NCBI GenBank assembly: GCA_013416795.1
Contig: RQSC01000016.1
Location: 101,610 to 130,582, forward strand
Origin: Prasinococcaceae sp. CCMP 1430
Lineage: Eukaryota > Plantae > Prasinodermophyta
Direction: 5' to 3'
Length of the DNA stretch: 28,973 nucleotides
This document shows positions 1-19,984 of the stretch, piece after piece. A program made the translations under genes and the position numbers. Each line of letters opens with the position of its first letter. Positions within the stretch are counted from its first letter, which is position 1. The notes beneath the pieces were generated by a model that saw only the letters and a list, made by a program, of their open reading frames with translations, was not told the origin of the DNA and did no database searches.

Positions 1-1
1 G

Positions 2-1807
2 AGTGGACGCGCCGCCAAAGTGGTCGCGCTCGCCAAGTCCCAGCAACGCAAGCTGCGCATGCACGTCCACCCTGACAGGCTCACCGCTGCCCGCAAGGAG
101 GCGCTTGGCAACGCCCTCCTCGACAAGATCGCCGACGTCAACTGCGTCCTCGATGCGGCTCTGCTCACCGTGGGCGACGGCAAGGCGGTGGTCGCCTACC
201 TCGACTCCCTTCCCCCCGACCCCCGCACCTCCACCGCCGGATGCGCGCCAGGGGCGGTTCAAGGCGTTGTCGTCGTGGGCTTCCCGCTCGGCACCAAGGA
301 CTTCGTTGCAGGGGCTCTCGCGAAGAAGGACGCGGTGTACTACCGCAAGCTCACCGCCTGCAACCAGTTCTCCGCGTGGGGACACAACAGCGCAGCGCTC
401 TTGCTGCTCCGTATGTGCGTCCACCCCATCAGCGACTACCTCCTGCGCGGCCTCTTCCCGGGCGGCAGGGGCGAACAGGACAGGTACGCTGAGCCAACAC
501 ACTTCCTCGTGAAGCGTCACCACGCCCTGCTTCAGGCCACAGTGGACTGCGCGCTCGGCCAGATCCCGCCAGACGACACTCCGACCCGCACCGAGTCGCT
601 GGCGAAGATCTTCCCCAAGCACGTCGGGCTTCCGATCTCCCAGGGAGGATTCGGTATGCGCGCCCCTTCCACCGTTCGCCTGCCGGCGTGGGTTGGTGCG
701 AGGACTTCAGTCCTTCACCTCGCCACACGCCACCCCCTCGCTTGGCAGTACTTCACCCGCCCCGACACAGCGGGCGCTGCCCTGTACGAGGCCCTGCAGA
801 CCATGCTCAACACCGACCACGACACCAAAGCTCCACCGTTCCCAGCCAATGCCGACCCAGCTTCCATGTCAATCCCGGCGGACGTCTGCCAGAACATCCT
901 GCAGAAAGCCGTCGACGGACTCATCAAGAACGAGCTCCTCACCCTCTCCAACGTCACAACGGAGGACCTCGTTCGCCTCAGCTCCGTCTTGCACAAGGAC
1001 AACTGCATGTATCGCACGTTCAAGCACCCTGTCTACAGACACCGCTTCGCCTCCCCACAAGACCCGCTCATGCCTCGCATCACCGAGCGCGGCTACTGCA
1101 TGGCCTGGTGTCGTCGCTTCGGGCTGCAGTCGAGGCTCGTCTCTCCGGACGCCCCACACGCTCCCTCGTGCCACTCTGCAGCAGGCATCAACGGCGCCCA
1201 CGCCACGGTCTGCTTGTCGACAGCAGGGGAGCGCACCTACCGCCACAACCGCCTCGTGCGCAACTTCGCGAAGGTCGCTCGCCGCACCGGCTACCACGTG
1301 CACACCAACGGCCCCAGCTCCACCAACTCGTTCGAGTACTCGTTCGGTACTGACGAAAATGGCCAGCCCACTGACCTGCGCTCGGACCTAGTCATCACCG
1401 ACACCAACAATGGCAACAGACACTGCCTCGACGTCACCTTCACGGATCCGTCCGCCAAGATCAACATGGCAGGCGCGAACCCGTCCACAGCGGCGGGCCT
1501 GGAGCGCCTCTACAAGGTTCACTGCCAGAAGTACGCGAAGATCTGCTCGCACCACGGCATCCAGTTCCACACGCTGGCGTTCGACACCCTGGGCCGGGCG
1601 CACAGGTCCTCCAGAAGTGCCATCGAGCACCTCTTCACCCACAGGGTCACGGCGACAAACCCAAGCCGCTGGCCGACGGACAAGGTCCTTCGGGTCCTTG
1701 CCGACGGCCTGCACAGTTCATCGTCGGCATGCGTGCTCCGCGCGTGCGGCGTGCACACACACGACCGCCCAAGGCGCAGCTCTCGCAGCCGCGCTACGGG
1801 TGGATAG
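2..1807 (+). CDS. Non-LTR retrotransposon-derived protein (CRE/R2-like type): RT thumb/post-RT region, C-terminal Cys/His knuckle and restriction-like endonuclease (RLE); 5' incomplete
   Basis: Motifs GVVVVGFPLG (RT domain 7-like), AALLLLRMC..SDYLLR, LPISQGGFG, C..HA..C followed by RHN (1241-1249), RSDL..DVT (1379-1438, PD-D type), K..QKY and F..LAFDTLG. Frame is open from position 2, with TAG at 1805-1807. Confidence 0.85.
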   Translation, partial: SGRAAKVVALAKSQQRKLRMHVHPDRLTAARKEALGNALLDKIADVNCVLDAALLTVGDGKAVVAYLDSLPPDPRTSTAGCAPGAVQGVVVVGFPLGTKDFVAGALAKKDAVYYRKLTACNQFSAWGHNSAALLLLRMCVHPISDYLLRGLFPGGRGEQDRYAEPTHFLVKRHHALLQATVDCALGQIPPDDTPTRTESLAKIFPKHVGLPISQGGFGMRAPSTVRLPAWVGARTSVLHLATRHPLAWQYFTRPDTAGAALYEALQTMLNTDHDTKAPPFPANADPASMSIPADVCQNILQKAVDGLIKNELLTLSNVTTEDLVRLSSVLHKDNCMYRTFKHPVYRHRFASPQDPLMPRITERGYCMAWCRRFGLQSRLVSPDAPHAPSCHSAAGINGAHATVCLSTAGERTYRHNRLVRNFAKVARRTGYHVHTNGPSSTNSFEYSFGTDENGQPTDLRSDLVITDTNNGNRHCLDVTFTDPSAKINMAGANPSTAAGLERLYKVHCQKYAKICSHHGIQFHTLAFDTLGRAHRSSRSAIEHLFTHRVTATNPSRWPTDKVLRVLADGLHSSSSACVLRACGVHTHDRPRRSSRSRATGG

Positions 1808-1878
1808 CTCGCTCTCACACATGCACCTAGATCTTACACACGCGCGCTACGCAACCTTGCGCTTGCGTCTTCTCGTAT

Positions 1879-1883
1879 TGTAA
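1879..1883 (+). promoter_or_regulatory. TGTAA green-algal-type polyadenylation signal of the left arm (mirror at 3277-3281 on the minus strand)
   Basis: TGTAA lies in the 92-nt 3' UTR, 16 nt before the arm end. UGUAA is the known near-upstream poly(A) signal of chlorophytes. Confidence 0.5.
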
Positions 1884-1899
1884 TCGCACCCTACACTAC

Positions 1900-2436
1900 C
1901 TCTCGACGCTCGTCCTGGACAAGCTCCACGCCAGGATGCCCAACACTCCCACCCTGGACATGGCTACCAGGCACGACCTGTTCGCCGCACTCCAGGCGAT
2001 CGCCGCACAGCTGCGTCCTCCGGCGCGCCCACGGCGCTCTCCACATCGTCAGGGAACCCCACCAGTAGCGCCAAGGCCACCCCCAGCCGCACAGGGTGCG
2101 TTCACTCCGGTGCCAACACCGACCGCCGCCGTCGCCGCCATGGCCGACGCTCCGGCCGCCGACGCAGGCGCCCCCGAAGCAGGGGACCACGACTCCGACG
2201 ACATCCACTTCCTGCCCGAAGCCGACCTCGCCGCCGTCGACTCCCGCCCGCTGCATACCAATTACAGCGGGTGTCACGGCTGCGGCTCCAAGAAGCACCG
2301 CTGGCGCGACTGCCCTCTGAACGACGGCACGCTCACCCTCCAGCAGGCCAAGCGCCGCTTCCAGCAGTCGGTCGCTGCAATGTCGCACACCGCTCTGCCC
2401 GAGCACACCGCTCCGCCAGAGCCGACCGACGCCTGA
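1900..2436 (+). CDS. Gag C-terminal part with CCHC zinc knuckle
   Basis: C-H-G-C-G-S-K-K-H-R-W-R-D-C (C-x2-C-x4-H-x4-C) at 2272-2313. The frame is open from the 1900 junction (LSTLVLDKLHARMPNTPT...), with TGA at 2434-2436. Confidence 0.85.
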   Translation, partial: LSTLVLDKLHARMPNTPTLDMATRHDLFAALQAIAAQLRPPARPRRSPHRQGTPPVAPRPPPAAQGAFTPVPTPTAAVAAMADAPAADAGAPEAGDHDSDDIHFLPEADLAAVDSRPLHTNYSGCHGCGSKKHRWRDCPLNDGTLTLQQAKRRFQQSVAAMSHTALPEHTAPPEPTDA

Positions 2437-3260
2437 CTACGCTCGGGCGAGCCAGTAGTCAGTAGTCCCCCTAGCGAACCCACCGCCGTCCGGCTGGCTG
2501 CAGTGGGTAAGACCCTCCCCACCTTCTACGCTGCACTCAACGACCGGCGCGTCACCGTGCTGGCCGATACGGGCGCCAGCCTTAGCTTCATCTCCAAGAC
2601 CAAGGCGCAGGAGTTGGGTCTGACGACTGACGTGTGCCCACCCATCCAGGTGGTGCACAGCAACCAGTCCACGGAGCGCTCAACCAAGCTGGTCCGAGCT
2701 GCACACCTCAAGCTGGGCCCTGGCTGGGGCGCGCCCATCGACCTGCACGTGCTCGACCACCTGGGCCCACACCAGCAGATCATCATGGGCCAGTCGTTCA
2801 TGCGCCCCCGGAACGCGCACCTGAAGATGAATCGCGATGGCACGACCTGCCTGGAGATGACGCTCGGCCCACGCCGCGTCGAACTCGTGGCCGACGTGCC
2901 CAACGAGACATACCTCGAGGCGAACGCCGCGCTCACTGCCATCTCCGCCACCACCCAGGCCGAGACCCTCACCACCTGGCGCGATCGCATCCAGGCCATG
3001 CCGATTGAGGAGCAATACGACCTGACGCTTCACCAACAAGCGCGCCTCGACTCGCTTCAACACCGCTTCCCCAGGGTGTACGAAGACCCCACGTACGACA
3101 CGCACGTTGATCACCCTCTGGGCGAACAACAGCTGGTAGTTCAGGCCGGCGCCGCACTTCCGAAAGGACGGCCAGCGCGCCCGCTCTCCAAGGCGAAAGC
3201 AGAGGCCCTTCTCGACATTCTCAACAAGCTCATGACGAAGAACTACATCGCGAAGTCGAA
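1900..3260 (+). mobile_element. Internal fragment of a Ty3/Gypsy LTR retrotransposon (gag C-terminus, aspartic protease, start of RT), truncated on both sides by the inverted arms
   Basis: CCHC knuckle, DTGAS protease motif and a typical pre-RT segment in gag-pro-RT order. No integrase lies between protease and RT, which fits Gypsy rather than Copia. Confidence 0.85.
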
Positions 3261-3264
3261 GTAG
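2437..3264 (+). CDS. Pol fragment: retropepsin aspartic protease plus N-terminal start of reverse transcriptase (truncated)
   Basis: VTVLADTGASLSFIS (Asp at 2566-2568), IIMGQSFM flap, then FPRVYEDP...RPARPLSKAKAEALLDILNKLMTKNYIAKSK, the segment that normally precedes SPW/Y in Gypsy RT. Same frame as gag. The final stop is supplied by the right arm. Confidence 0.88.
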   Translation, partial: LRSGEPVVSSPPSEPTAVRLAAVGKTLPTFYAALNDRRVTVLADTGASLSFISKTKAQELGLTTDVCPPIQVVHSNQSTERSTKLVRAAHLKLGPGWGAPIDLHVLDHLGPHQQIIMGQSFMRPRNAHLKMNRDGTTCLEMTLGPRRVELVADVPNETYLEANAALTAISATTQAETLTTWRDRIQAMPIEEQYDLTLHQQARLDSLQHRFPRVYEDPTYDTHVDHPLGEQQLVVQAGAALPKGRPARPLSKAKAEALLDILNKLMTKNYIAKSK

Positions 3265-5159
3265 TGTAGGGTGCGATTACAATACGAGAAGACGCAAGCG
3301 CAAGGTTGCGTAGCGCGCGTGTGTAAGATCTAGGTGCATGTGTGAGAGCGAGCTATCCACCCGTAGCGCGGCTGCGAGAGCTGCGCCTTGGGCGGTCGTG
3401 TGTGTGCACGCCGCACGCGCGGAGCACGCATGCCGACGATGAACTGTGCAGGCCGTCGGCAAGGACCCGAAGGACCTTGTCCGTCGGCCAGCGGCTTGGG
3501 TTTGTCGCCGTGACCCTGTGGGTGAAGAGGTGCTCGATGGCACTTCTGGAGGACCTGTGCGCCCGGCCCAGGGTGTCGAACGCCAGCGTGTGGAACTGGA
3601 TGCCGTGGTGCGAGCAGATCTTCGCGTACTTCTGGCAGTGAACCTTGTAGAGGCGCTCCAGGCCCGCCGCTGTGGACGGGTTCGCGCCTGCCATGTTGAT
3701 CTTGGCGGACGGATCCGTGAAGGTGACGTCGAGGCAGTGTCTGTTGCCATTGTTGGTGTCGGTGATGACTAGGTCCGAGCGCAGGTCAGTGGGCTGGCCA
3801 TTTTCGTCAGTACCGAACGAGTACTCGAACGAGTTGGTGGAGCTGGGGCCGTTGGTGTGCACGTGGTAGCCGGTGCGGCGAGCGACCTTCGCGAAGTTGC
3901 GCACGAGGCGGTTGTGGCGGTAGGTGCGCTCCCCTGCTGTCGACAAGCAGACCGTGGCGTGGGCGCCGTTGATGCCTGCTGCAGAGTGGCACGAGGGAGC
4001 GTGTGGGGCGTCCGGAGAGACGAGCCTCGACTGCAGCCCGAAGCGACGACACCAGGCCATGCAGTAGCCGCGCTCGGTGATGCGAGGCATGAGCGGGTCT
4101 TGTGGGGAGGCGAAGCGGTGTCTGTAGACAGGGTGCTTGAACGTGCGATACATGCAGTTGTCCTTGTGCAAGACGGAGCTGAGGCGAACGAGGTCCTCCG
4201 TTGTGACGTTGGAGAGGGTGAGGAGCTCGTTCTTGATGAGTCCGTCGACGGCTTTCTGCAGGATGTTCTGGCAGACGTCCGCCGGGATTGACATGGAAGC
4301 TGGGTCGGCATTGGCTGGGAACGGTGGAGCTTTGGTGTCGTGGTCGGTGTTGAGCATGGTCTGCAGGGCCTCGTACAGGGCAGCGCCCGCTGTGTCGGGG
4401 CGGGTGAAGTACTGCCAAGCGAGGGGGTGGCGTGTGGCGAGGTGAAGGACTGAAGTCCTCGCACCAACCCACGCCGGCAGGCGAACGGTGGAAGGGGCGC
4501 GCATACCGAATCCTCCCTGGGAGATCGGAAGCCCGACGTGCTTGGGGAAGATCTTCGCCAGCGACTCGGTGCGGGTCGGAGTGTCGTCTGGCGGGATCTG
4601 GCCGAGCGCGCAGTCCACTGTGGCCTGAAGCAGGGCGTGGTGACGCTTCACGAGGAAGTGTGTTGGCTCAGCGTACCTGTCCTGTTCGCCCCTGCCGCCC
4701 GGGAAGAGGCCGCGCAGGAGGTAGTCGCTGATGGGGTGGACGCACATACGGAGCAGCAAGAGCGCTGCGCTGTTGTGTCCCCACGCGGAGAACTGGTTGC
4801 AGGCGGTGAGCTTGCGGTAGTACACCGCGTCCTTCTTCGCGAGAGCCCCTGCAACGAAGTCCTTGGTGCCGAGCGGGAAGCCCACGACGACAACGCCTTG
4901 AACCGCCCCTGGCGCGCATCCGGCGGTGGAGGTGCGGGGGTCGGGGGGAAGGGAGTCGAGGTAGGCGACCACCGCCTTGCCGTCGCCCACGGTGAGCAGA
5001 GCCGCATCGAGGACGCAGTTGACGTCGGCGATCTTGTCGAGGAGGGCGTTGCCAAGCGCCTCCTTGCGGGCAGCGGTGAGCCTGTCAGGGTGGACGTGCA
5101 TGCGCAGCTTGCGTTGCTGGGACTTGGCGAGCGCGACCACTTTGGCGGCGCGTCCACTC
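3261..5159 (-). repeat. Right arm of the long inverted repeat (outer boundary may extend beyond 5159)
   Basis: Mirror of 1-1899. The outer limit cannot be fixed because the left arm is cut by the window edge. Confidence 0.97.
3353..5140 (-). CDS. Second, identical copy of the RLE-type non-LTR ORF
   Basis: Identical 595-aa translation. The frame stays open without an ATG up to a TGA at 5359-5357. Confidence 0.85.
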   Translation of the reverse strand: MVALAKSQQRKLRMHVHPDRLTAARKEALGNALLDKIADVNCVLDAALLTVGDGKAVVAYLDSLPPDPRTSTAGCAPGAVQGVVVVGFPLGTKDFVAGALAKKDAVYYRKLTACNQFSAWGHNSAALLLLRMCVHPISDYLLRGLFPGGRGEQDRYAEPTHFLVKRHHALLQATVDCALGQIPPDDTPTRTESLAKIFPKHVGLPISQGGFGMRAPSTVRLPAWVGARTSVLHLATRHPLAWQYFTRPDTAGAALYEALQTMLNTDHDTKAPPFPANADPASMSIPADVCQNILQKAVDGLIKNELLTLSNVTTEDLVRLSSVLHKDNCMYRTFKHPVYRHRFASPQDPLMPRITERGYCMAWCRRFGLQSRLVSPDAPHAPSCHSAAGINGAHATVCLSTAGERTYRHNRLVRNFAKVARRTGYHVHTNGPSSTNSFEYSFGTDENGQPTDLRSDLVITDTNNGNRHCLDVTFTDPSAKINMAGANPSTAAGLERLYKVHCQKYAKICSHHGIQFHTLAFDTLGRAHRSSRSAIEHLFTHRVTATNPSRWPTDKVLRVLADGLHSSSSACVLRACGVHTHDRPRRSSRSRATGG

Positions 5160-5357
5160 GCCCCGTTGACAGACGCGAAGCGAGATGAAGGCCCGAAGTT
5201 CTTCGACGGAAGGCTTGGTCGGGATGGTGGAGAGTGGAGGAGGGGGTAGCGCGGTCGACTCTTTGCCGTGGAAGGCGGAGTGGGGGCGGAAGGTGTCGAT
5301 GATGGAGAGGACCATGGCGTCGGGGTCCAGCTTGCGGATCTCGGTGACGTACTGCAT
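5085..5357 (-). other. Short ORF with TE-like codon usage (MQYVTEIRKLDPDAMVLSIIDTF...) immediately upstream of and overlapping the right-arm ORF in another frame
   Basis: ATG at 5357-5355, with C/G-ending codons like the neighbouring TE ORFs. Offset by one nucleotide from the 595-aa frame. Identity unresolved. Confidence 0.35.
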
Positions 5358-5643
5358 CAGTGGCTCGCGAGAGACCAGGCAGTGCTGGGGTAGGTCATCA
5401 GGTAAATGACTGTCTAGACTGACCACGGGAGACTAGGTGAGGACGATACATTATGTAGCATGCGAGCTACATATCATCACAACACTTGAGACGTTCCACA
5501 GCACTCCTTGTGTCACCCCCTCCCCTCTAGCGCGCTCTAGAGGCACCTTACTCCCCTCATTGTCATCTCGTCTCGCGGCGCCACCCAAGGATCGAGCAAT
5601 ACTGCCTGTCGCCCCACTCACCCTCGCCGTCGCCGCACTGGCT

Positions 5644-5697
5644 CCGCGCGGCACACCCGCGCCGCGCGGCACACCCGCGCCGCGCGGCACACCCGCG
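5644..5697. repeat. Tandem repeat, 3 x 18 bp (CCGCGCGGCACACCCGCG)
   Basis: Three exact units read directly. Confidence 0.92.
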
Positions 5698-5838
5698 CCT
5701 TGTAAGGGAGCTCGGGATGAGGGGGAGCACCCTCTCAGAACCCTTCGCGTGCACGCCTGCGTCGCCGCCGCGCCGCACCCACCGCGCGTGCGCGGGTCGC
5801 GCGTCACAGTGCCTCCGCAGTTCTTACATTGTCTCGCC

Positions 5839-12480: not shown

Positions 12481-14395
12481 TCAGTGTTCCGTATGCAAGA
12501 CGGTCCCGAACATGAGCTGGCAGCTCGTGAGACGCGGCTCTTCGGTCGAGCGCACGTCGGAGTAGTCGAGCTCGAGGCGCACTACTCCACAGTTGTCCAC
12601 CTTTCCTTTGGTGAGCTTCTCGGCCGTGGCGTCGTCCCCCGGCCCGCGCTCGCGCACGAGCCGCCGCAGAAGTTGCCGAATGAAGAGCGAGTGACCCACG
12701 CTGATGACCACCTCCGATCCGCAGTGCCTCACGCTCTGCATAAAGTCCTGGTCGGGCACGCGCCGTCACATCGGTCAGAAATTGCAGGTGGCGCAGACAG
12801 AGGCTGTCAGCGCGCCTTACAAGTGTGTACAGCGGCGATGCGAGGCATCAGTCGCGCTGGCGTCTTTCAGCCGCCAGCATCTATTCGCGCACCTCGAGAC
12901 GCTCTTCCATCTCTTTGGAGGAGTCTCTGTCGTCGGTAGTAGTCCACCACTCCGACGAGGCGTCGTTCGGATCAATGATAGTGCCTGGACCGAATGCTGC
13001 CGCCGCCGTTTGTGCACCAGCCACTGCTGCCAGCTTTTTGGCGGCGCGACGCGCGATGTCACTGCCCTTGGCGACGCCGACGGTATCGAGGCCGCCGATG
13101 CCCTTGACCTCCCGCGCGGACGACAACAGAGTGATGCGTCCCTTGAGCGGGTCGACGTTGGGTGCATTGCTTGATTCGTTGGCCCCGGTCGCTACCGCCG
13201 CGTGCGCTGCCGCGTTCCCGCTTCCTTCTTCGGCGTCCTGGATATCCGCCGCAGCCCTTTCACCCCCGGCACAAGCTGCCCCCTCCGCCACCGAGGCCGC
13301 GCGCAGCGCTGCCAGCGTGCTCTCAACCCCCGCATTGGCGCCGAGCAGCTCAGCTGGGGCGCCGCCGCCGTCGCCCTCGCCGATGCCCGGTGGTACCGAC
13401 TGCAGCGCCTCTGTACTCCCCTCGACAGATGTGCGAACCGTCGGCGCCTCGAGGCCGCCCGGCGTCGCGCTGACGCTATGCACGGAGAGCGCCGGGTGAC
13501 CCGCAAGGGCCACGGCAGCTGTCTGCAGCGCGCGTGTGAGCGGCGAGCTAAAAATGGCTCCCGCCTCGACGAACTCGCGCACCTCCGACAGGCTCTTTCG
13601 CTCGGCATCCGTCGCTTCACTCAGCCAGCGATCACGCAGCGCCTCGGCCTGCTGCGTGCCGCGCATTGTGAGGGGATGGTCGTAGCTCATCATGGCGAGC
13701 ACGTTTTTCTCGCGCTTCGCCTCGTTCCACGCCGACTCGCCGTGACGCACAAGGTAGAGCACCGTGCGCAGCGGGCTGGGCGGTGGCGGCACGCGCTCTA
13801 CTAGCAGTGAGCACCCGGGCAGCAGCAGCACGCCTCGCCGCAGCTCGAGCACAGCGCGGCTGCCCACCGACGGCAGCTGCGAGCCACTCACCGACGCCTG
13901 CGCGAGCGCTCGCCCACCGTACCCATTGCGGCCACCCGAGCCGCGCACCACCACGAGCAGCACATCCTCAGATTGGATGTTCACGCCGAGGTCGCGCGTC
14001 GAGTTCCAAACCAGCGTCTCCGAGGCGGCCCTCTTTTTGGAGGATCCTGACGCAGAGAGCGGCCCGCACCGCCTCTCCGGCAGCAGCAGCGGTCGCGACT
14101 TGGGCTTCCCGCAAGCGTCCAGGAGGCGCATCTCTATGCACAACGCGCCGCCTGTGGCGCGGCTGCCTCCACCAGAGACGCCGTCGAGCAGGGGCGCGGC
14201 GACGACCAGCGCGGCGACGCGTACGAGCGCCAGGTTGGGCTTAGCGGAGGGGCTGAGCTCTGCCTCGCGGTCGAAGTGCAGCCCCTCACACGCCACCTCG
14301 CCGCCTTCATAACCCAGGTCATCGGCGGCGGCGGGGCTGCCCTTGTCGGCGAAGGCGTCCTTCACACCGCGCAGCCCACGCTTGAGCGCGTTCAT
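12481..14395 (-). CDS. Histidine phosphatase (phosphoglycerate mutase-like) superfamily protein with N-terminal C2-like region; exons 14395-12893 and 12747-12481
   Basis: LYLVRHGESAWN, IFSSPLTRALQTA and VISVGHS motifs. A GT...CAG intron at 12892-12748 with a CTGAC branch candidate joins EERLE to DFMQSVR in frame. ATG at 14395 (MNALKRG). Confidence 0.88.
12748..12892 (-). other. Spliceosomal intron, 145 bp
   Basis: GAG|GTGCGC donor and GACCAG|GAC acceptor. Removing it restores the reading frame and the second His motif. Confidence 0.85.
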
Positions 14396-15140
14396 GGCCG
14401 CGCCGCCGCGCCCTTCCCCGACCCGCCCGCGCCCGCGCTCGCGCCCGAGCCCGGGCGCTCGGGCCCGGGCGCCTGCCGGCGGTGTGGCGGCAGTTCCCCC
14501 GCGGCGACGCTGCCGCCACGCGCACACGCCGAGGCAAAAAAAAAAATGCGTGGACCCTTTTTCGTTTCCGCGGGGCGATTCGCCCTCAATGGGAATCCGC
14601 GCGCGATGCAATGGGTTGCAAAATATATCATTCGCGGGCGACGGGGTTTGGGTTTGGGCCTGCGAGTTTTGGCCCCCCGCAGCAGCGGCCGCTGCCCTAG
14701 ACGGTCAAACCGCGCGCGTTTTTTTTTTTCGTTTGATGGCAATTCGAATATATTTGAGTTTTTTTTTTTCAAAAAATGGGAACCCACTGCAGGTGTCTGG
14801 TACGCATACCCCCAAACCGTCCTTTGCGGCGCCGGCTGGGGCAGCGGAGGGAGGTGGGGAGGGGGGAGGCGACCAAGGTATGGCGGAGGTGTGTGTGTGT
14901 GTGTGTTGCGACGTGTGTGTGAGGTGGGGGGAGATGGGATGCCGAGAAGCATACATTCGCGCGCCGGGCGGGGTGGCAGAGGCCTCGCGCTCCGTGCCCT
15001 GCGCCCCGCGCCTGACGCACTGGGCGCCTCTCGCGAGCGCTCTCGAGCACCGCGCAGGGCCCCGCCTGCAGCGCGGCAGCGCGGGGCGCCTGCGCGCCCG
15101 CGCACCTGCACAGCTGCTCTACCTGTCGCGCCGTTGGGCC

Positions 15141-18100
15141 ATGCAGGACGCGGCGGCGGAGGGAAGCGATCTGGAGCATGCGCTCGACGATGCATCCACA
15201 GAAGAGGGAAGCGAGCCGGAGGCTGAAGGAGCCGGCGACTGGTTGTACGCCGAATCTAGCGCCGAAGTGGACGCTGGCGCGCGTGACGGCAGCCAGGCGG
15301 AGGGCACGCGTGCGGAGGCGGCGGACGCGCTGGTGCGGGCTTTGGCACAGGCTGCGCCACGCTCACCCTCACTGGAGCCGACAGGAGATAGCAGCGTCGC
15401 AGAGGTCGGCCTGACCGAGTGGCGTGCTGAAGATGGGACAGACAGCGGCCAAGCATCTGCCACAGAGGCCGAGCTCGTAGCCGAGGGCGGGTCAGACGCC
15501 AGCGCACGGGGGCCGGGCGCTCCTGACGCGGGCGACGCCGCTGGCGCTGCGCAACAGAGCAGTGGGGGGGCCGTTGACGGTTTTGACGAGTCGAGCTCGG
15601 GCTCCGAAGAGTCCGAGCGTGCTGAAGAAGCGACAGACAGCGGCCAAGCATCTGCCACAGAGGCCGAGCTCGTAGCCGAGGGCGGGTCAGACGCCAGCGC
15701 ACGGGGGCCGGGCGCTCCTGACGCGGGCGACGCCGCTGGCGCTGCGCAACAGAGCAGTGGGGGGGCCGTTGACGGTTTTGACGAGTCGAGCTCGGGCTCC
15801 GAAGAGTCCGAGGATCTCGATGAGAGCGCATTCGACGACTTCGTGCAGGATGATGACGACTCTGGAGAGGACGAGGATGAGGACGGCGAAGCAGACGACA
15901 TCGACGCAAAGATTGCCCACGCATACGCCGAACATATGAAGGCGCTGAGCGCCCGCCGCGCGGAGCTGCCGCCCAGGCCCGGCAGCGCAGTCCGCCCCCA
16001 AAGCCCAACGACTGCCACCCGGCGCATTCGCGTGGCGGAGCAGCGCGCGCAGCCACGCTCAGCCGACCTGACGGCCTTCCCCGCCGCGGCCGCGGAGGCT
16101 GAAGCGCGCACCGAGTTCGTGTCGACTAATGTGCACTTCAAGCAAATCCGAGAGGAGGAGGAGTTTGCCCCCCCAGACTCGCCCCCAAAGGCGATCGTCA
16201 AGCCAGTTGGTGACAACGACTCGCCGCATGCAAGCATTCCGCGAAAGAGACCCGCATCGGCGGCCGCAGGTGCCGCCAGGAGAAAGCTGGTGCGCGCTAC
16301 TCCCACCGAGCAGCAGCAGGATGACGCGCAGTCGCCGCGACAGACACAGACACAGCCACCGACGCCACAGTCCCAGCCGCAGCTGAGCTCTGACGAGGAC
16401 CTTTTCGCTCCCGGTGACGACGCCGAGGGGGAATTGTTCTCGGCATTGGAGCTCGAGAATGAGGACTGCTGGTATGAAGTTCATCCGCACACGGCAGAAG
16501 GCCCAAGCGAAGACCGTGCAGACGAGAGCGAGGAAATCCACCAGCGCCGCTTAGCGGAGCTCAGGGAGATGGAGCGGCGCGTGCGAGAGCAGATACAGCA
16601 CCAGCGCCGCTTGGCGGAGCTCAGGGAAGCGGAGCGGCGGGTGCGAGAGCAGATACAGCTTCTGAGACAGCTGCAAGGCGACAGTCAATTGACAGAAGAG
16701 GGCGAGAATATCGTCACGGCGCACGCGACGGGTGGCGTCCACGACGACCTCTGCGATGACCATGCTGCGTACACATCCGTGTCTCCCTGGCCCAGTGAAG
16801 ACGGCGACGAGGGGCGTTCGGAAGCGGCGGTTGCGGCCGAGGAGGCCGCTGCTCGAGCTGCGGCGGCCGCCGAGGAGGAGGCAGCGGCTCGAGCTGCGGC
16901 GGCCGCCGAGGAGGAGGCTGCGGCTCGAGCTGCGGCGGCCGCCGAGGAGGAGGCAGCGGCAGCGGAGGTCCGCCGCCTGGAGGCTGCCGAGCGCCGCCGC
17001 GCGGCTCGCGAGGCTGTCGCGGCAGAGCGCGCACTAGCCGCCGCCGAGGCACGCGCCGCGGCCGCCGAGGAGCGCGCGCGCGACGAGGCTAAGGCCCGCA
17101 CCCGCGCGGAGCGCGCCGAGGCGCGCTTATACGCTGCGCGCGCACAACGCGGCGGCTTCATCGGCTGGACAAAGGCTGCCAGCGGGCAAACACTCAGCGA
17201 GGTCCAGCGCACGGCGTTGCGCATTGCCGAGACGCAAGCGACGGCTTCCGGGACAGGCGCGTCGTCCCGCACCGCGCAGCCGCCCGCGTCGAAGTTTGGT
17301 CCGGGGGGCAGCTCTGGCACGGCCGCGAGCGTCGGCAGTGCCCCTCGGAGGCGCAGACGTCTTCGTCGTACCAGCGCCGCAAGCACCGCCAGCACGTCAT
17401 CGAGGCCAGCCTCGATGCATTCCCGCAGCCTTGATCGAAGTGACACCTCTGCTGCCCGCAAGGCGCTCGAGGCAGCGCGTCGCGCACCACGGCAGCCCGC
17501 GTGGATGCCGTCTTCGAGCAAGCCCGTCATCGTGCCCGTGGAAGAGATGAGCGCCAGCAGCCGTGGCGCGCCCCCCTCGTCTGGCGCCCGACGCGTGCGT
17601 AGGGCGAATCGGAGGGCCGCGCATGGCAAGGGCGCCCCCGTAGCGGGGACAGGCGTGACTGAGGACGGGGACACTTCCGCGGGCCCTCCTGGCCCTGCGT
17701 CGGCTTTCGGCCGCGCCGCCCTTGCGCCGCGTCGCCCGAAGAGTGCCCCCCCGCGCAGGCCCCGTGCCCGCGACGCTCGCGTCAGGCCACCTTCTGCGGC
17801 GCGTGTGCACATGCGCGGCCAGGTGACGGTGGAGACTGTGCAGCAGCGCCCTGCTACACCGGTCGGGGCGGCGACAGCGATGCCAGCGCCTGCGTGGCGG
17901 CAGCGCCCTGCCACCGCGGCTGGGACGGCCACCGCGACGCCAGCGTCCGCACCGCACGCGTCTGTGGACCCTCCCCTGGACCCATCGGACTTGCTGGCGC
18001 AAGTGATGGAAGTGAACGCCGCGTGCCGCGTGCTCGGTCTGGGCGAGCGCTATCGCGTAGCGCCCGGTGGCAGGCGCAACGAGCTCGTCGTGGAGGTGCA

Positions 18101-18436
18101 CAAGCGCCTACCACGCATGCTCGGCGACGAGGAGGGCCCTGGACCCGCCACCGTGCGGCGAGCACGCGGGGCGGGCGGCTCAGGCGCGTGGTCGCCGCCG
18201 CCGCCGCTTCGCCGGATTAGCGTGGACGTATTCGCGTCCACGCACCACCGCCTGACGACGCATGCGCGGCGCGCCGCGATGAAGAGCCGCGCGACCGGAG
18301 CGTCGGTGCGCAGCAGCGATCCGTCCTCGCGGCGGTCGGCGCGCACTTCCGGCGGCGGGGACGACGGCGGTGGGGGCAGCGCCGACGGGGATGCGCCCGC
18401 CCACTTTCCGCCGCGGCCGTCGCGCGCGCGCTTGGC
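15141..18436 (+). CDS. Large low-complexity, largely disordered protein (acidic N-terminus, Ala/Glu/Arg helical repeats, multiple RP[GAKP]SA / RPAT motifs); 3' end lost in the N gap
   Basis: Open frame of about 1100 codons from ATG 15141 (MQDAAAEGSDLE) with typical host codon usage. No family recognised. Confidence 0.7.
15422..15812. repeat. In-frame tandem duplication, 2 x 195 bp (65 aa), near-identical
   Basis: GACAGACAGCGGCC at 15437 and 15632. The copies differ only around GAAGATGG vs GAAGAAGC. Confidence 0.93.
16539..16659. repeat. In-frame tandem repeat, 2 x 60 bp (HQRRLAELRE[M/A]ERRVREQIQ)
   Basis: CCAGCGCCGC at 16541 and 16601. Confidence 0.9.
16851..16958. repeat. In-frame tandem repeat, 3 x 36 bp (ARAAAAAEEEAA)
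   Basis: GCTCGAGCTG at 16851, 16887 and 16923. Confidence 0.9.
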
Positions 18437-19236
18437 NNNNNNNNNNNNNNNNNNNNNNNNNNNNNNNNNNNNNNNNNNNNNNNNNNNNNNNNNNNNNNNN
18501 NNNNNNNNNNNNNNNNNNNNNNNNNNNNNNNNNNNNNNNNNNNNNNNNNNNNNNNNNNNNNNNNNNNNNNNNNNNNNNNNNNNNNNNNNNNNNNNNNNNN
18601 NNNNNNNNNNNNNNNNNNNNNNNNNNNNNNNNNNNNNNNNNNNNNNNNNNNNNNNNNNNNNNNNNNNNNNNNNNNNNNNNNNNNNNNNNNNNNNNNNNNN
18701 NNNNNNNNNNNNNNNNNNNNNNNNNNNNNNNNNNNNNNNNNNNNNNNNNNNNNNNNNNNNNNNNNNNNNNNNNNNNNNNNNNNNNNNNNNNNNNNNNNNN
18801 NNNNNNNNNNNNNNNNNNNNNNNNNNNNNNNNNNNNNNNNNNNNNNNNNNNNNNNNNNNNNNNNNNNNNNNNNNNNNNNNNNNNNNNNNNNNNNNNNNNN
18901 NNNNNNNNNNNNNNNNNNNNNNNNNNNNNNNNNNNNNNNNNNNNNNNNNNNNNNNNNNNNNNNNNNNNNNNNNNNNNNNNNNNNNNNNNNNNNNNNNNNN
19001 NNNNNNNNNNNNNNNNNNNNNNNNNNNNNNNNNNNNNNNNNNNNNNNNNNNNNNNNNNNNNNNNNNNNNNNNNNNNNNNNNNNNNNNNNNNNNNNNNNNN
19101 NNNNNNNNNNNNNNNNNNNNNNNNNNNNNNNNNNNNNNNNNNNNNNNNNNNNNNNNNNNNNNNNNNNNNNNNNNNNNNNNNNNNNNNNNNNNNNNNNNNN
19201 NNNNNNNNNNNNNNNNNNNNNNNNNNNNNNNNNNNN
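18437..19236. other. Assembly gap (800 N)
   Basis: Run of N. Confidence 1.
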
Positions 19237-19318
19237 GGCGCGCCGCGCGCGCGCGCGCACGGGGCGAGCGCGTGCTGACAGCTCGCCCGCCCGCGTCGCC
19301 GCCGCCGATGCCCTGCAG

Positions 19319-19984
19319 GCCAAGTCCACCAACCATACCGCGCACAACCAGGCCTACAAGAACCACCGCAACGGCATCAAGAAGGTCAAGCAGCACAAGT
19401 ACAAGTCGCTCAAGGGCGTACGTCGCGCGCGAGAAGCGCGGCTGGGCGGCGCTGCGCTCGCGGTGGGCGGCGTGGCGCGAGTGCCCGCGCGCGTGCGTCG
19501 GGGGGGTTGCTCGGGAGAGGCTGGGCGCGGGAGCGCTCGCGCGCCGAGGCCACCAGCGGCCTCTGGCGCAACTGGGCAGCGCCGCCTGCGGACGGACGCC
19601 TGCGGGAAAAGCCCCTGGCATCGTGCTCGCACGGTGGCGGCGGCCGCCGCTGTGCCGCGCCAAGGGCGCCCACCGAGCGGGCCGAAGAGGAGGCCGCGTG
19701 CGCGCATCCGCGTTTGGTGGGGTTGGATGGGGATCCCGGGCGCGCGAGAGCGCGCGTTGCGCCCATCGGGGTGTGCGTGAGAGAGGGTGGGCGCTTGGCC
19801 GGCGGCTTTGCCGACAAGAGGTGCTGACACTGCCGCGCTACCTGTGCCCACGGCATCCCTTCTATGTGCGCCGCCCGTTTCTCTCCGCCTCCCTCCGGCG
19901 GACTCGCAGATGGACCCCAAGTTCCTGCGCAACCAGCGCTACGCGAAGAAGCACAACGCTGTGAAGGGCAAGAAGGACGCGTAA
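19319..19984 (+). CDS. RPL29: 60S ribosomal protein L29 (eL29); exons 19319-19417 and 19910-19984, initiator ATG exon presumably in the gap
   Basis: AKSTNHTAHNQAYKNHRNGIKKVKQHKYKSLKG + MDPKFLRNQRYAKKHN match the eL29 signature. Acceptor CTGCAG| at 19318, intron GTACGT...CGCAG at 19418-19909, GCTGAC branch-like motifs before both acceptors. Confidence 0.96.

Follow-up and report, generated by a model that had tools for sequence, protein, structure and literature searches.

Organization of the locus

At the left end of the window (the whole 28,973-nt stretch that was analysed), an inverted repeat, which is genuine in the Prasinoderma coloniale assembly, encloses a Ty3/Gypsy fragment and is followed by several short repeat pieces and an ABC transporter gene (Table 1). 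The locus is best read as an ordinary transposon nest 3′ of this gene, with no new mobile unit, and the two arms as truncated copies of one young R2-like retrotransposon, which flank the Gypsy fragment with their tails inward.

Table 1. Features assigned at the inverted repeat and in its right flank (window coordinates)
Feature	Position	Strand	Remarks
Left arm, 3′ part of R2-like (RLE) non-LTR element	1..1899	+	ORF 20-1807, 595 aa, open to window start; 3′ UTR 1808-1899
Ty3/Gypsy fragment: C-terminal half of gag, protease, first RT residues	1900..3260	+	Corresponds to ~1188-2548 of the full relative L002
Right arm, same element, 5′-truncated inside RT	3261..5385	-	Motif C region kept at 5295-5384; mirror of left arm over 3261-5159
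Filler, piece of another repeat, 96 nt	5386..5481	.	Adjoins the 5′ junction of the right arm
Gypsy LTR end, last 81 nt (ends ...CTCATTG)	5482..5562	+	Same stretch precedes the PBS in L002
Inverted piece of the arm element, 31 nt (aa VISSRGATQG, L018 283-313)	5562..5592	+	Opposite to right arm
Repeated low-complexity stretch, 18-nt tandem units at 5631-5699	5593..5769	.	Depth 2-5x
Flanking host gene, ABC transporter PRCOL_00005193	5839..10245	-	3′ end faces the transposon nest

The geometry described in the first-pass annotation was reproduced: positions 1-1899 and 3261-5159 are exact reverse complements (i + j = 5160), the core between them has 1361 bp, and both arms end inward at ...CCCTACACTAC. 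The repeat search gave a slightly larger extent (1-1902/3258-5159, scored as 100% complementary); on reading of the sequence, the pair 1900/3260 is a c/a mismatch, and the exact arms therefore end at 1899 and 3261. Their length had been given as at least 1.9 kb, which is indeed a minimum, as the right copy extends to 5385 and the left arm is clipped by the window start and not by a contig end. Other copies of the family differ by ~1.4-6%, so that 0 differences between the arms over 1899 nt can hardly be due to chance. The left arm has 99.7% amino acid identity with a longer copy, P0003.

The core was correctly named Gypsy gag-protease: it matches Asp_protease_2/gag-asp_proteas (E = 2.5e-12) and contains a CCHC knuckle (2272-2313), the ORFs being gag at 1936-2436 and protease at 2503-3264. 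Nucleotide identity with L002, a full-length element from marine metagenomes with the complete order gag-PR-RT-RH-INT, is 74%. Features shared with Ty3/Gypsy elements are gag with its CCHC knuckle, the aspartic protease and the beginning of RT; however, the window keeps only the 1361-bp internal fragment and the 81-nt LTR end, with pol missing. When the X2/X5 Gypsy contig (see below) was sought via the protease ORF, only a related family with 82% amino acid identity was retrieved; exact look-ups with the gag ORF and with the flanking gene PRCOL_00005193 gave no match.

The right arm has two deletions relative to the undeleted copy L018, one of ~115-120 nt at 5294/5295 and one of ~150 nt at 5178-5181, and a branch at 5178 was also seen in the read contigs. 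Beyond its 5′ end, the filler matched neither the arm element nor the Gypsy element, and in all three DNA runs contigs reach 5385 from a different 200-nt left neighbour. Logan contigs L008 and L009, as well as the X2/X5 contig, start 33 nt before the Gypsy LTR end. The 31-nt inverted piece lies, in element coordinates, 19 nt upstream of the start of the right arm (L018 333); the read contigs contain a joint between 5385 and 5592 on opposite strands, with loose ends at 5562 and 5592. An inverted upstream piece on the flank side, with a 19-nt gap, is the topology predicted for the twin priming of L1, and twin priming may thus have formed this end of the arm. However, at 31 nt this piece is very short; between it and the sense part lie 176 nt of foreign sequence (the other repeat and the 81-nt Gypsy LTR end), and the arm element is of the RLE and not the APE type.

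The arm family

Judged from its sequence, the arm family is a dispersed, 5′-truncated non-LTR family that bears an RLE (R2-like). The arm consists of the 3′ part of the element, namely the post-RT linker, zinc knuckle, RLE nuclease and 92-nt UTR, with the motifs H-x3-C-x9-H-x3-C, RHN, RSD, DVT and ERLYK. In agreement with the earlier description of the arms as RLE-encoding, a profile made from the arm ORF and 20 relatives matched the C-terminal zinc-knuckle/endonuclease region of R2 proteins in PDB (9nl3, 9dou and 8gh6; E-values of 5.7e-8, 7.2e-8 and 1.1e-5). RT motifs are present upstream of the arm-equivalent part in P0003, with a weak Pfam RVT_1 match (E = 0.034), and RVT_1 was found N-terminal to the homologous region in seven of the eight long distant relatives scanned (P0053-P0080; E = 8e-10 to 7e-21), the one with no RVT_1 match being P0064. 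A reading of the HPD segment as a J-domain was discarded, there being no Pfam DnaJ match and the RT catalytic motifs lying further upstream in the longer copies.

The 3′ terminus is identical to the base at six junctions with unrelated downstream flanks, and contig L019 terminates exactly at this end. The 5′ truncation point varies among the copies, which together with the common 3′ end is a signature of target-primed reverse transcription, and the depth of the read contigs rises toward the 3′ end, as is typical of 5′-truncated non-LTR families. No common motif was found in the downstream flanks of the six junctions. The sequence TCGAC occurs 1-3 nt past both junctions in the window; it is absent at the four junctions in wild contigs and was regarded as a coincidence. 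Scanning metagenomes with the 20-nt arm tail yielded a single match; the contig concerned has 42% GC and no further similarity, and the match was attributed to chance. In the wild contigs L001, L014, L015 and L016, members of the family are nested in or beside their own copies in both orientations, including tail-to-tail. The family thus accumulates in nests, also beside its own copies.

With R2 and NeSL-type elements, the arm family shares a single ORF in which RT is followed by the linker, the zinc knuckle and a PD-(D/E)XK endonuclease (RHN, E, R-x-D, DVT, E..K), as well as a precise 3′ end without poly(A) and variable 5′ truncation. It differs from them in that no site specificity is seen across the six unrelated flanks, that another residue stands in place of the first knuckle Cys, and that the RVT_1 match of the closest long copy is weak. 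Insertion at one target site is typical of R2, NeSL and CRE, and is not a defining property of all RLE elements. A second (AP) endonuclease, as in Dualen/RandI, may be encoded in the unseen N-terminal part. This apparently young RLE-bearing family is an addition to the transposon inventory of P. coloniale, which among the unicellular members of the earliest-diverging green-plant phylum is the only one sequenced.

Read contigs across the junctions

The read evidence consists of assembled short-read contigs from three DNA runs (X1, X2 and X5). The longest contig has the same size in X2 and X5. JGI usually assigns one BioProject per library. X2 and X5 probably represent mutation-accumulation lines from one strain, CCMP1413, such JGI-sequenced lines having been described (PMC11884799); their interpretation as different natural strains was dropped on this account. 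X1 may be the sample of the assembly itself.

A contig spanning 1898-3289, and hence the junction between core and right arm, was found in X1, X2 and X5, and this junction is therefore real. In X2 and X5, however, the left arm-core junction is absent from the main path: a 2479-nt core contig runs leftward past 1898 into 1054 nt of the gag 5′ half and then 33 nt of the LTR end. The length of this extension agrees with L002, in which the distance from the LTR end to the equivalent point is ~1063 nt. The sole support for the left junction in the reads comes from X1, in which a contig with the same core as the window breaks exactly at 1898, as expected if the core has a second left neighbour (the arm) at this point. 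At 1898-1899, the arm end and the gag sequence overlap by 2 nt (AC).

Five sites (~5 in 1361 nt) differ in the core of X2 and X5. If these two runs are from the same strain, the sites imply at least two core copies differing by ~0.4%. Relative to the unique flank, depth was ~10-15x for the arm 3′ ends, 1-5x for the parts upstream and ~1.45x for the core; the core-to-flank ratio (1.43-1.49 in all three runs) fits neither one nor two copies cleanly. The arm letters at ~238-343 of the window are carried by no contig of the three runs, in which only a variant copy is present. The reference assembly thus disagrees at this locus with independent read sets from the same species, a disagreement of use for the calling of structural variants and transposition in the mutation-accumulation lines.

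Origin of the inverted arms

We favour, with a probability of roughly 0.55, a transposon nest in which a young R2-type family inserted twice, in opposite orientations, into one Ty3/Gypsy copy; among the four options considered in the first-pass annotation, this one is the best supported. We infer the following mechanism and order of events. Each insertion would have occurred by target-primed reverse transcription, in which the exact 3′ end of the element is copied onto the nicked target, which would explain why both arms end toward the Gypsy fragment at one identical base. Junctions at the exact element terminus on both sides are accounted for by reverse transcription and not by DNA-level duplication. 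The right copy would be a dead one (5′-truncated, internally deleted, and with a twin-priming-like 5′ inversion plus filler) whose insertion deleted or replaced the pol region of the Gypsy copy. The left copy, in mid-gag, would be the later event and would be present in only one of the at least two near-identical core versions (paralogue, allele or culture lineage), with the gag 5′ half and the LTR presumably to its left; its outer end and any target-site duplication fall outside the window. Counting against this reading, a bias to transposon-rich sites must be assumed for two hits that lie only 1.36 kb apart; such a bias is seen in the wild contigs. The left copy would be specific to a paralogue, an allele or a lineage, or is possibly misassembled; as a lineage-specific insertion, it would directly document that retrotransposition occurred recently in a genome whose point-mutation rate is very low.

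Misassembly due to repeats, which had also been proposed, is unlikely for the right junction, which occurs in all three runs, and may apply to the left arm. In that case the left arm would be an artefact of assembly or polishing and the actual order at the locus would be LTR - gag - protease - inverted arm; alternatively, the junction would be real and the perfect identity made by short-read polishing of multi-mapped repeats. We consider these two versions, taken together, possible though unlikely. They are consistent with the X2 and X5 core, which passes straight into the gag 5′ half without interruption at 1898, with the absence of the ~238-343 letters from the read contigs, with an 800-N run inside the window, and with the way in which the assembly was made (PacBio CLR reads assembled by NextDenovo and polished with Arrow and NextPolish; PMC7455551). 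However, a junction falling precisely on the 3′ end of the element requires real reads, and base 1898 is exactly where the contig breaks in X1, whose core sequence equals that of the window; moreover, a foldback from a missed adapter would leave no 1.36-kb unique spacer, and the window does not lie at a contig end.

The arms may also have been made identical at the DNA level, the left one being an inverted duplicate of the right one (by fold-back or template switch in the course of replication or repair) or having been overwritten by gene conversion. The 0 differences in the arms against the ~5 variable sites of the core copies and the 1.4-6% divergence of the family point in this direction, as does the AC overlap at 1898-1899; if the core copies are indeed ~0.4% apart, homogenisation or DNA-level copying fits better than two independent insertions. 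Nevertheless, we regard this origin as quite unlikely, as the breakpoint of a duplication must land by chance on the exact 3′ terminus of the element, and gene conversion still requires a prior independent insertion and therefore merges with the explanation by two insertions. For the latter, the 100% identity would reflect the youth of the copies, possibly enhanced by short-read polishing or by gene conversion between the neighbouring inverted repeats.

An origin in a single event is improbable: both 3′-OH ends of a linear Gypsy DNA fragment, or of a doubly broken chromosomal piece, would have been extended by the R2-like RT, one RNA population giving identical tail-inward copies, and the resulting perfect 1.9-kb palindrome, transcribed by read-through from the ABC transporter gene, would be a dsRNA source against two transposon families in an alga for which Dicer has not been reported.

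That the inverted arms serve as a source of hairpin RNA silencing both transposon families, another of the earlier proposals, is highly improbable, although the geometry permits it. The 3′ end of the ABC transporter gene points into the nest, and read-through from this gene is structurally possible, which would yield arm sense - core antisense - arm antisense, that is, a 1.9-kb perfect hairpin. Natural loci with inverted-duplicate transposons that give hairpin RNA are exemplified by Mu killer of maize. The present locus resembles it in the close inverted copies of a transposon part and in the candidate read-through from a neighbour gene. Seawater metatranscriptome contigs (X17) contain arm-family pieces of 95-99% identity; these pieces, however, carry differences and may derive from other copies or from DNA, none of the X17 contigs joins arm and core, and the structure is off the main path in two runs. 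The genome paper, moreover, lists the gain of the Dicer family only after the split of Prasinodermophyta (PMC7455551), and a literature search on RNAi genes in Prasinoderma gave nothing specific beyond this statement.

A composite mobile unit, in which endonuclease-encoding arms move Gag/protease cargo, is scarcely credible and was rejected, and a new kind of mobile element is not established by the locus. Structural symmetry is the sole argument for such a unit. Against it stand the depth of the core (~1.5x, versus ~10-15x at the 3′ ends of the arms) and the lack of the left junction from the main path in X2 and X5. Both arms are dead 5′-truncated fragments, the right one without most of RT and with a frameshifting deletion. 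The arm is also found elsewhere on its own, dispersed and with exactly this 3′ end next to unrelated sequence, which the first-pass annotation had named as counting against a composite unit. A DIRS-like element was likewise rejected, since the arms encode an RLE and not a tyrosine recombinase and the core is a Gypsy gag-protease.

The repeat border next to the ABC transporter gene

The unique flank on the right side is represented by a 6.6-kb read contig that begins at 5770. Two metagenome contigs with the ABC gene (L012 and L013) also end at this repeat border, which lies ~96 nt beyond the stop codon; there they carry a different arm fragment in the opposite orientation.

Inverted repeat, core and arm element

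A single large inverted repeat was found in the window by repeat search and base-by-base reading (see the table below). The base-by-base reading bore out the exact mirror-image arms described in the first-pass annotation and their common inward terminus, ...CCCTACACTAC; the repeat search adds 3 nt to each arm beyond the exact borders, with one mismatch among these 3 nt. The left arm is cut by the window start, which is not the contig end. The core was likewise correctly called a Gypsy gag-protease fragment, as seen from its protease match, its CCHC knuckle and its 74% nucleotide identity to a related full-length element (gag, PR and RT-RH-INT) in contigs L002-L009 from Tara and other marine metagenomes, of which it corresponds to approximately 1188-2548, a stretch that opens in mid-gag and reaches just into RT.

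Features of the arm-core-arm locus and of self-nested arm copies in wild metagenome contigs (window positions unless a contig is named)
Feature	Position	Strand	Evidence
Left arm, exact	1-1899	+	base-by-base reading
Core, 1361 bp	1900-3260	+	base-by-base reading
gag ORF (CCHC knuckle)	1936-2436 (2272-2313)	+	sequence
Aspartic protease ORF	2503-3264	+	Pfam, E 2.5e-12
Right arm, exact mirror part	3261-5159	-	base-by-base reading
Right copy, full extent	3261-5385	-	comparison with L018, P0003
Deletion, ~150 nt, frameshifting	5178-5181	-	versus L018
Deletion, 115-120 nt	5294/5295	-	versus L018
Piece of another repeat, 96 nt	5386-5481		adjoins right-arm 5' end
Gypsy LTR, last 81 nt	5482-5562	+	comparison with related Gypsy element
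Arm-element piece, 31 nt, inverted	5562-5592	+	comparison with L018, P0003
ABC transporter ORF, 1468 aa	5839-10245	-	domain scan, EukProt match
Arm copies in arm copies, tail-to-tail	L015 536-631, 2377-2826; L014 981-2057
Arm copy in arm copy, head-to-tail	L001 1756-1962

The 595-aa arm ORF had no Pfam match, and its nearest relatives were environmental copies (94-99% identity). EukProt P0003 (932 aa), a longer protein copy of the element, is 99.7% identical to it and extends upstream into reverse-transcriptase motifs. Exhaustive search found 62 relatives; when eight long distant ones were scanned, Pfam RVT_1 lay N-terminal to the homologous region in seven, and P0064 gave no RVT_1 match. A 21-sequence profile (consensus C..C...H...C / RHN / E / R.D / DVT / E..K) matched the zinc-knuckle and endonuclease C-terminus of the R2 structures 9nl3, 9dou and 8gh6 (E 6e-8 to 1e-5). 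Since the profile matches the R2 C-terminus and the relatives carry RVT_1, the arms, already annotated as RLE-encoding, represent the 3' portion of a non-LTR retrotransposon of R2-like type with an RLE; the family is a further member of this known kind. Note that the HPD segment (2-300), pointed out in the first-pass annotation, lies between the RT palm motifs, present upstream of it in P0003 and at right-arm 5295-5384, and the RLE, and had no Pfam DnaJ match.

The same precise 3' end was found in six instances, each with an unrelated downstream flank, and a seventh contig terminates exactly there; the 3' ends had no poly(A), and the flanks of the six junctions no common target motif. In the wild contigs L001, L014, L015 and L016, copies of the family lie inside and next to one another, in either orientation, and very short 3'-terminal pieces (50-70 nt) are repeatedly present (L015, L014 and L001). 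Read contigs from further arm copies were approximately 2% different. A variant in X1 and X5, DNA runs of Prasinoderma coloniale, has CCCG in place of 595 nt at 701-1297, indicating deletion derivatives in the same genome.

Right-arm 5' junction

The wild, undeleted copy L018 and P0003 served as references for the right arm. The arm is truncated within RT, immediately upstream of motif C, and its ~150-nt deletion is flanked by short direct repeats (CATCTCG / CATCGCG). The 31-nt inverted piece derives from only 19 nt upstream of the start of the sense part in element coordinates. This is the 5'-inversion topology of L1 twin priming, here with filler separating the inverted and sense parts; the arrangement suggests a twin-priming-like mechanism, and the filler (5386-5562) could come from template jumps of an R2-like RT.

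Origin of the arm-core-arm structure

Read evidence consisted of assembled Logan contigs of three DNA runs (X1, X2 and X5) and one seawater metatranscriptome. The best reading is that the R2-like element inserted twice into one Gypsy copy within a transposon nest: target-primed reverse transcription yields the exact 3' terminus every time and so explain both inner junctions, which DNA-level duplication would produce by coincidence only. Among the four earlier readings, this is the one of opposite insertions into one Gypsy copy; the nesting of the family among its own copies in wild contigs fits it.

Misassembly had also been proposed. For the right junction it is countered by a contig covering 1898-3289 in all three DNA runs, whose extension 29 nt into the right arm indicates that this junction is real. 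For the left arm it may apply. The contig of X1, the best-matching run, agrees with the window without a difference throughout the core and ends exactly at 1898, at an AC dinucleotide common to both sequences; were the arm the sole left neighbour, an extension of approximately 29 nt would be expected, as on the right, so the stop implies two alternative left neighbours. In X2 and X5, the core contig (2479 nt) lacks the left arm at 1899/1900 and continues 1054 nt further left of 1898 (approximately 1063 nt from LTR end to core in L002), followed by 33 nt equal to the LTR end at 5530-5562; the order in these runs is therefore LTR, PBS, 5' half of gag, core, inverted arm. The left junction may be confined to one version of the locus, or it may reflect misassembly. 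Between the two arms not one base differs, against approximately 0.4% among core copies. This pattern suggests that insertion was very recent, that gene conversion has acted between the inverted copies, or that short-read polishing has homogenised them; NextDenovo, Arrow and NextPolish were the tools used to assemble the genome from its PacBio CLR reads (PMC7455551).

Read-through from the ABC transporter gene, whose 3' end is directed into the nest, would give a perfect hairpin RNA, but no transcript across the hairpin was present among the metatranscriptome contigs. Those matching (199-543, 4506-4646 and 5078-5295) were 95-99% identical, and one had 152 letters in place of the window's deletion; from these differences the contigs come from other arm copies. 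Dicer is listed among families gained after the P. coloniale lineage split (PMC7455551). The composite mobile unit, which had been tied to recurrence of its junctions as opposed to a solo arm elsewhere, was rejected: neither inner junction recurs, the arm occurs on its own as a dispersed element, and both arms are dead fragments.

Number of core copies

Depth relative to the unique flank (5770 onward, right of the nest) was approximately 10-15x for arm 3' ends, 1-5x for more 5' arm parts, and 1.43-1.49x for the core in all three DNA runs. JGI usually assigns one BioProject per library, which fits the sixteen 2024 P. coloniale runs, with nearly one study per run, and the equal length of the longest contig in X2 and X5; these two are probably mutation-accumulation lines of CCMP1413. 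Such lines were JGI-sequenced for a 2025 paper, which has ONT data for T0 and for two of the lines, treats the genome as haploid in variant calling and describes chromosome 18 as duplicated (PMC11884799). Five sites (1965, 2183, 2259, 2619 and 2624) distinguish X2 and X5 from the window and from one another. If the two runs are such lines, these differences cannot be new mutations; most simply, they are assembly bubbles, since popped, between two or more near-identical copies of the core. No branch was found at 3260 in the read contigs; thus, every core copy would be followed by an arm 3' end. The copies may be paralogues, chromosome-18 homologues or culture lineages, which the contigs do not tell apart.

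Flanking gene and host genome

The ABC transporter ORF matches EukProt PRCOL_00005193 at 100% identity; this protein is from P. coloniale, whose genome has 69.8% GC (PMC7455551). The 'low-GC island' of the window's composition profile is due solely to exactly 800 N at 18437-19236, an assembly gap or masked stretch within a predicted 1873-aa ORF (14343-19964). In L012 (12241-12295) and L013 (9033-9087), Tara contigs of wild Prasinoderma, another arm-family fragment (arm positions 242-296) lies past the ABC gene, approximately 32 nt beyond the last aligned base and in the orientation opposite to the window; the nest downstream thus varies between populations.
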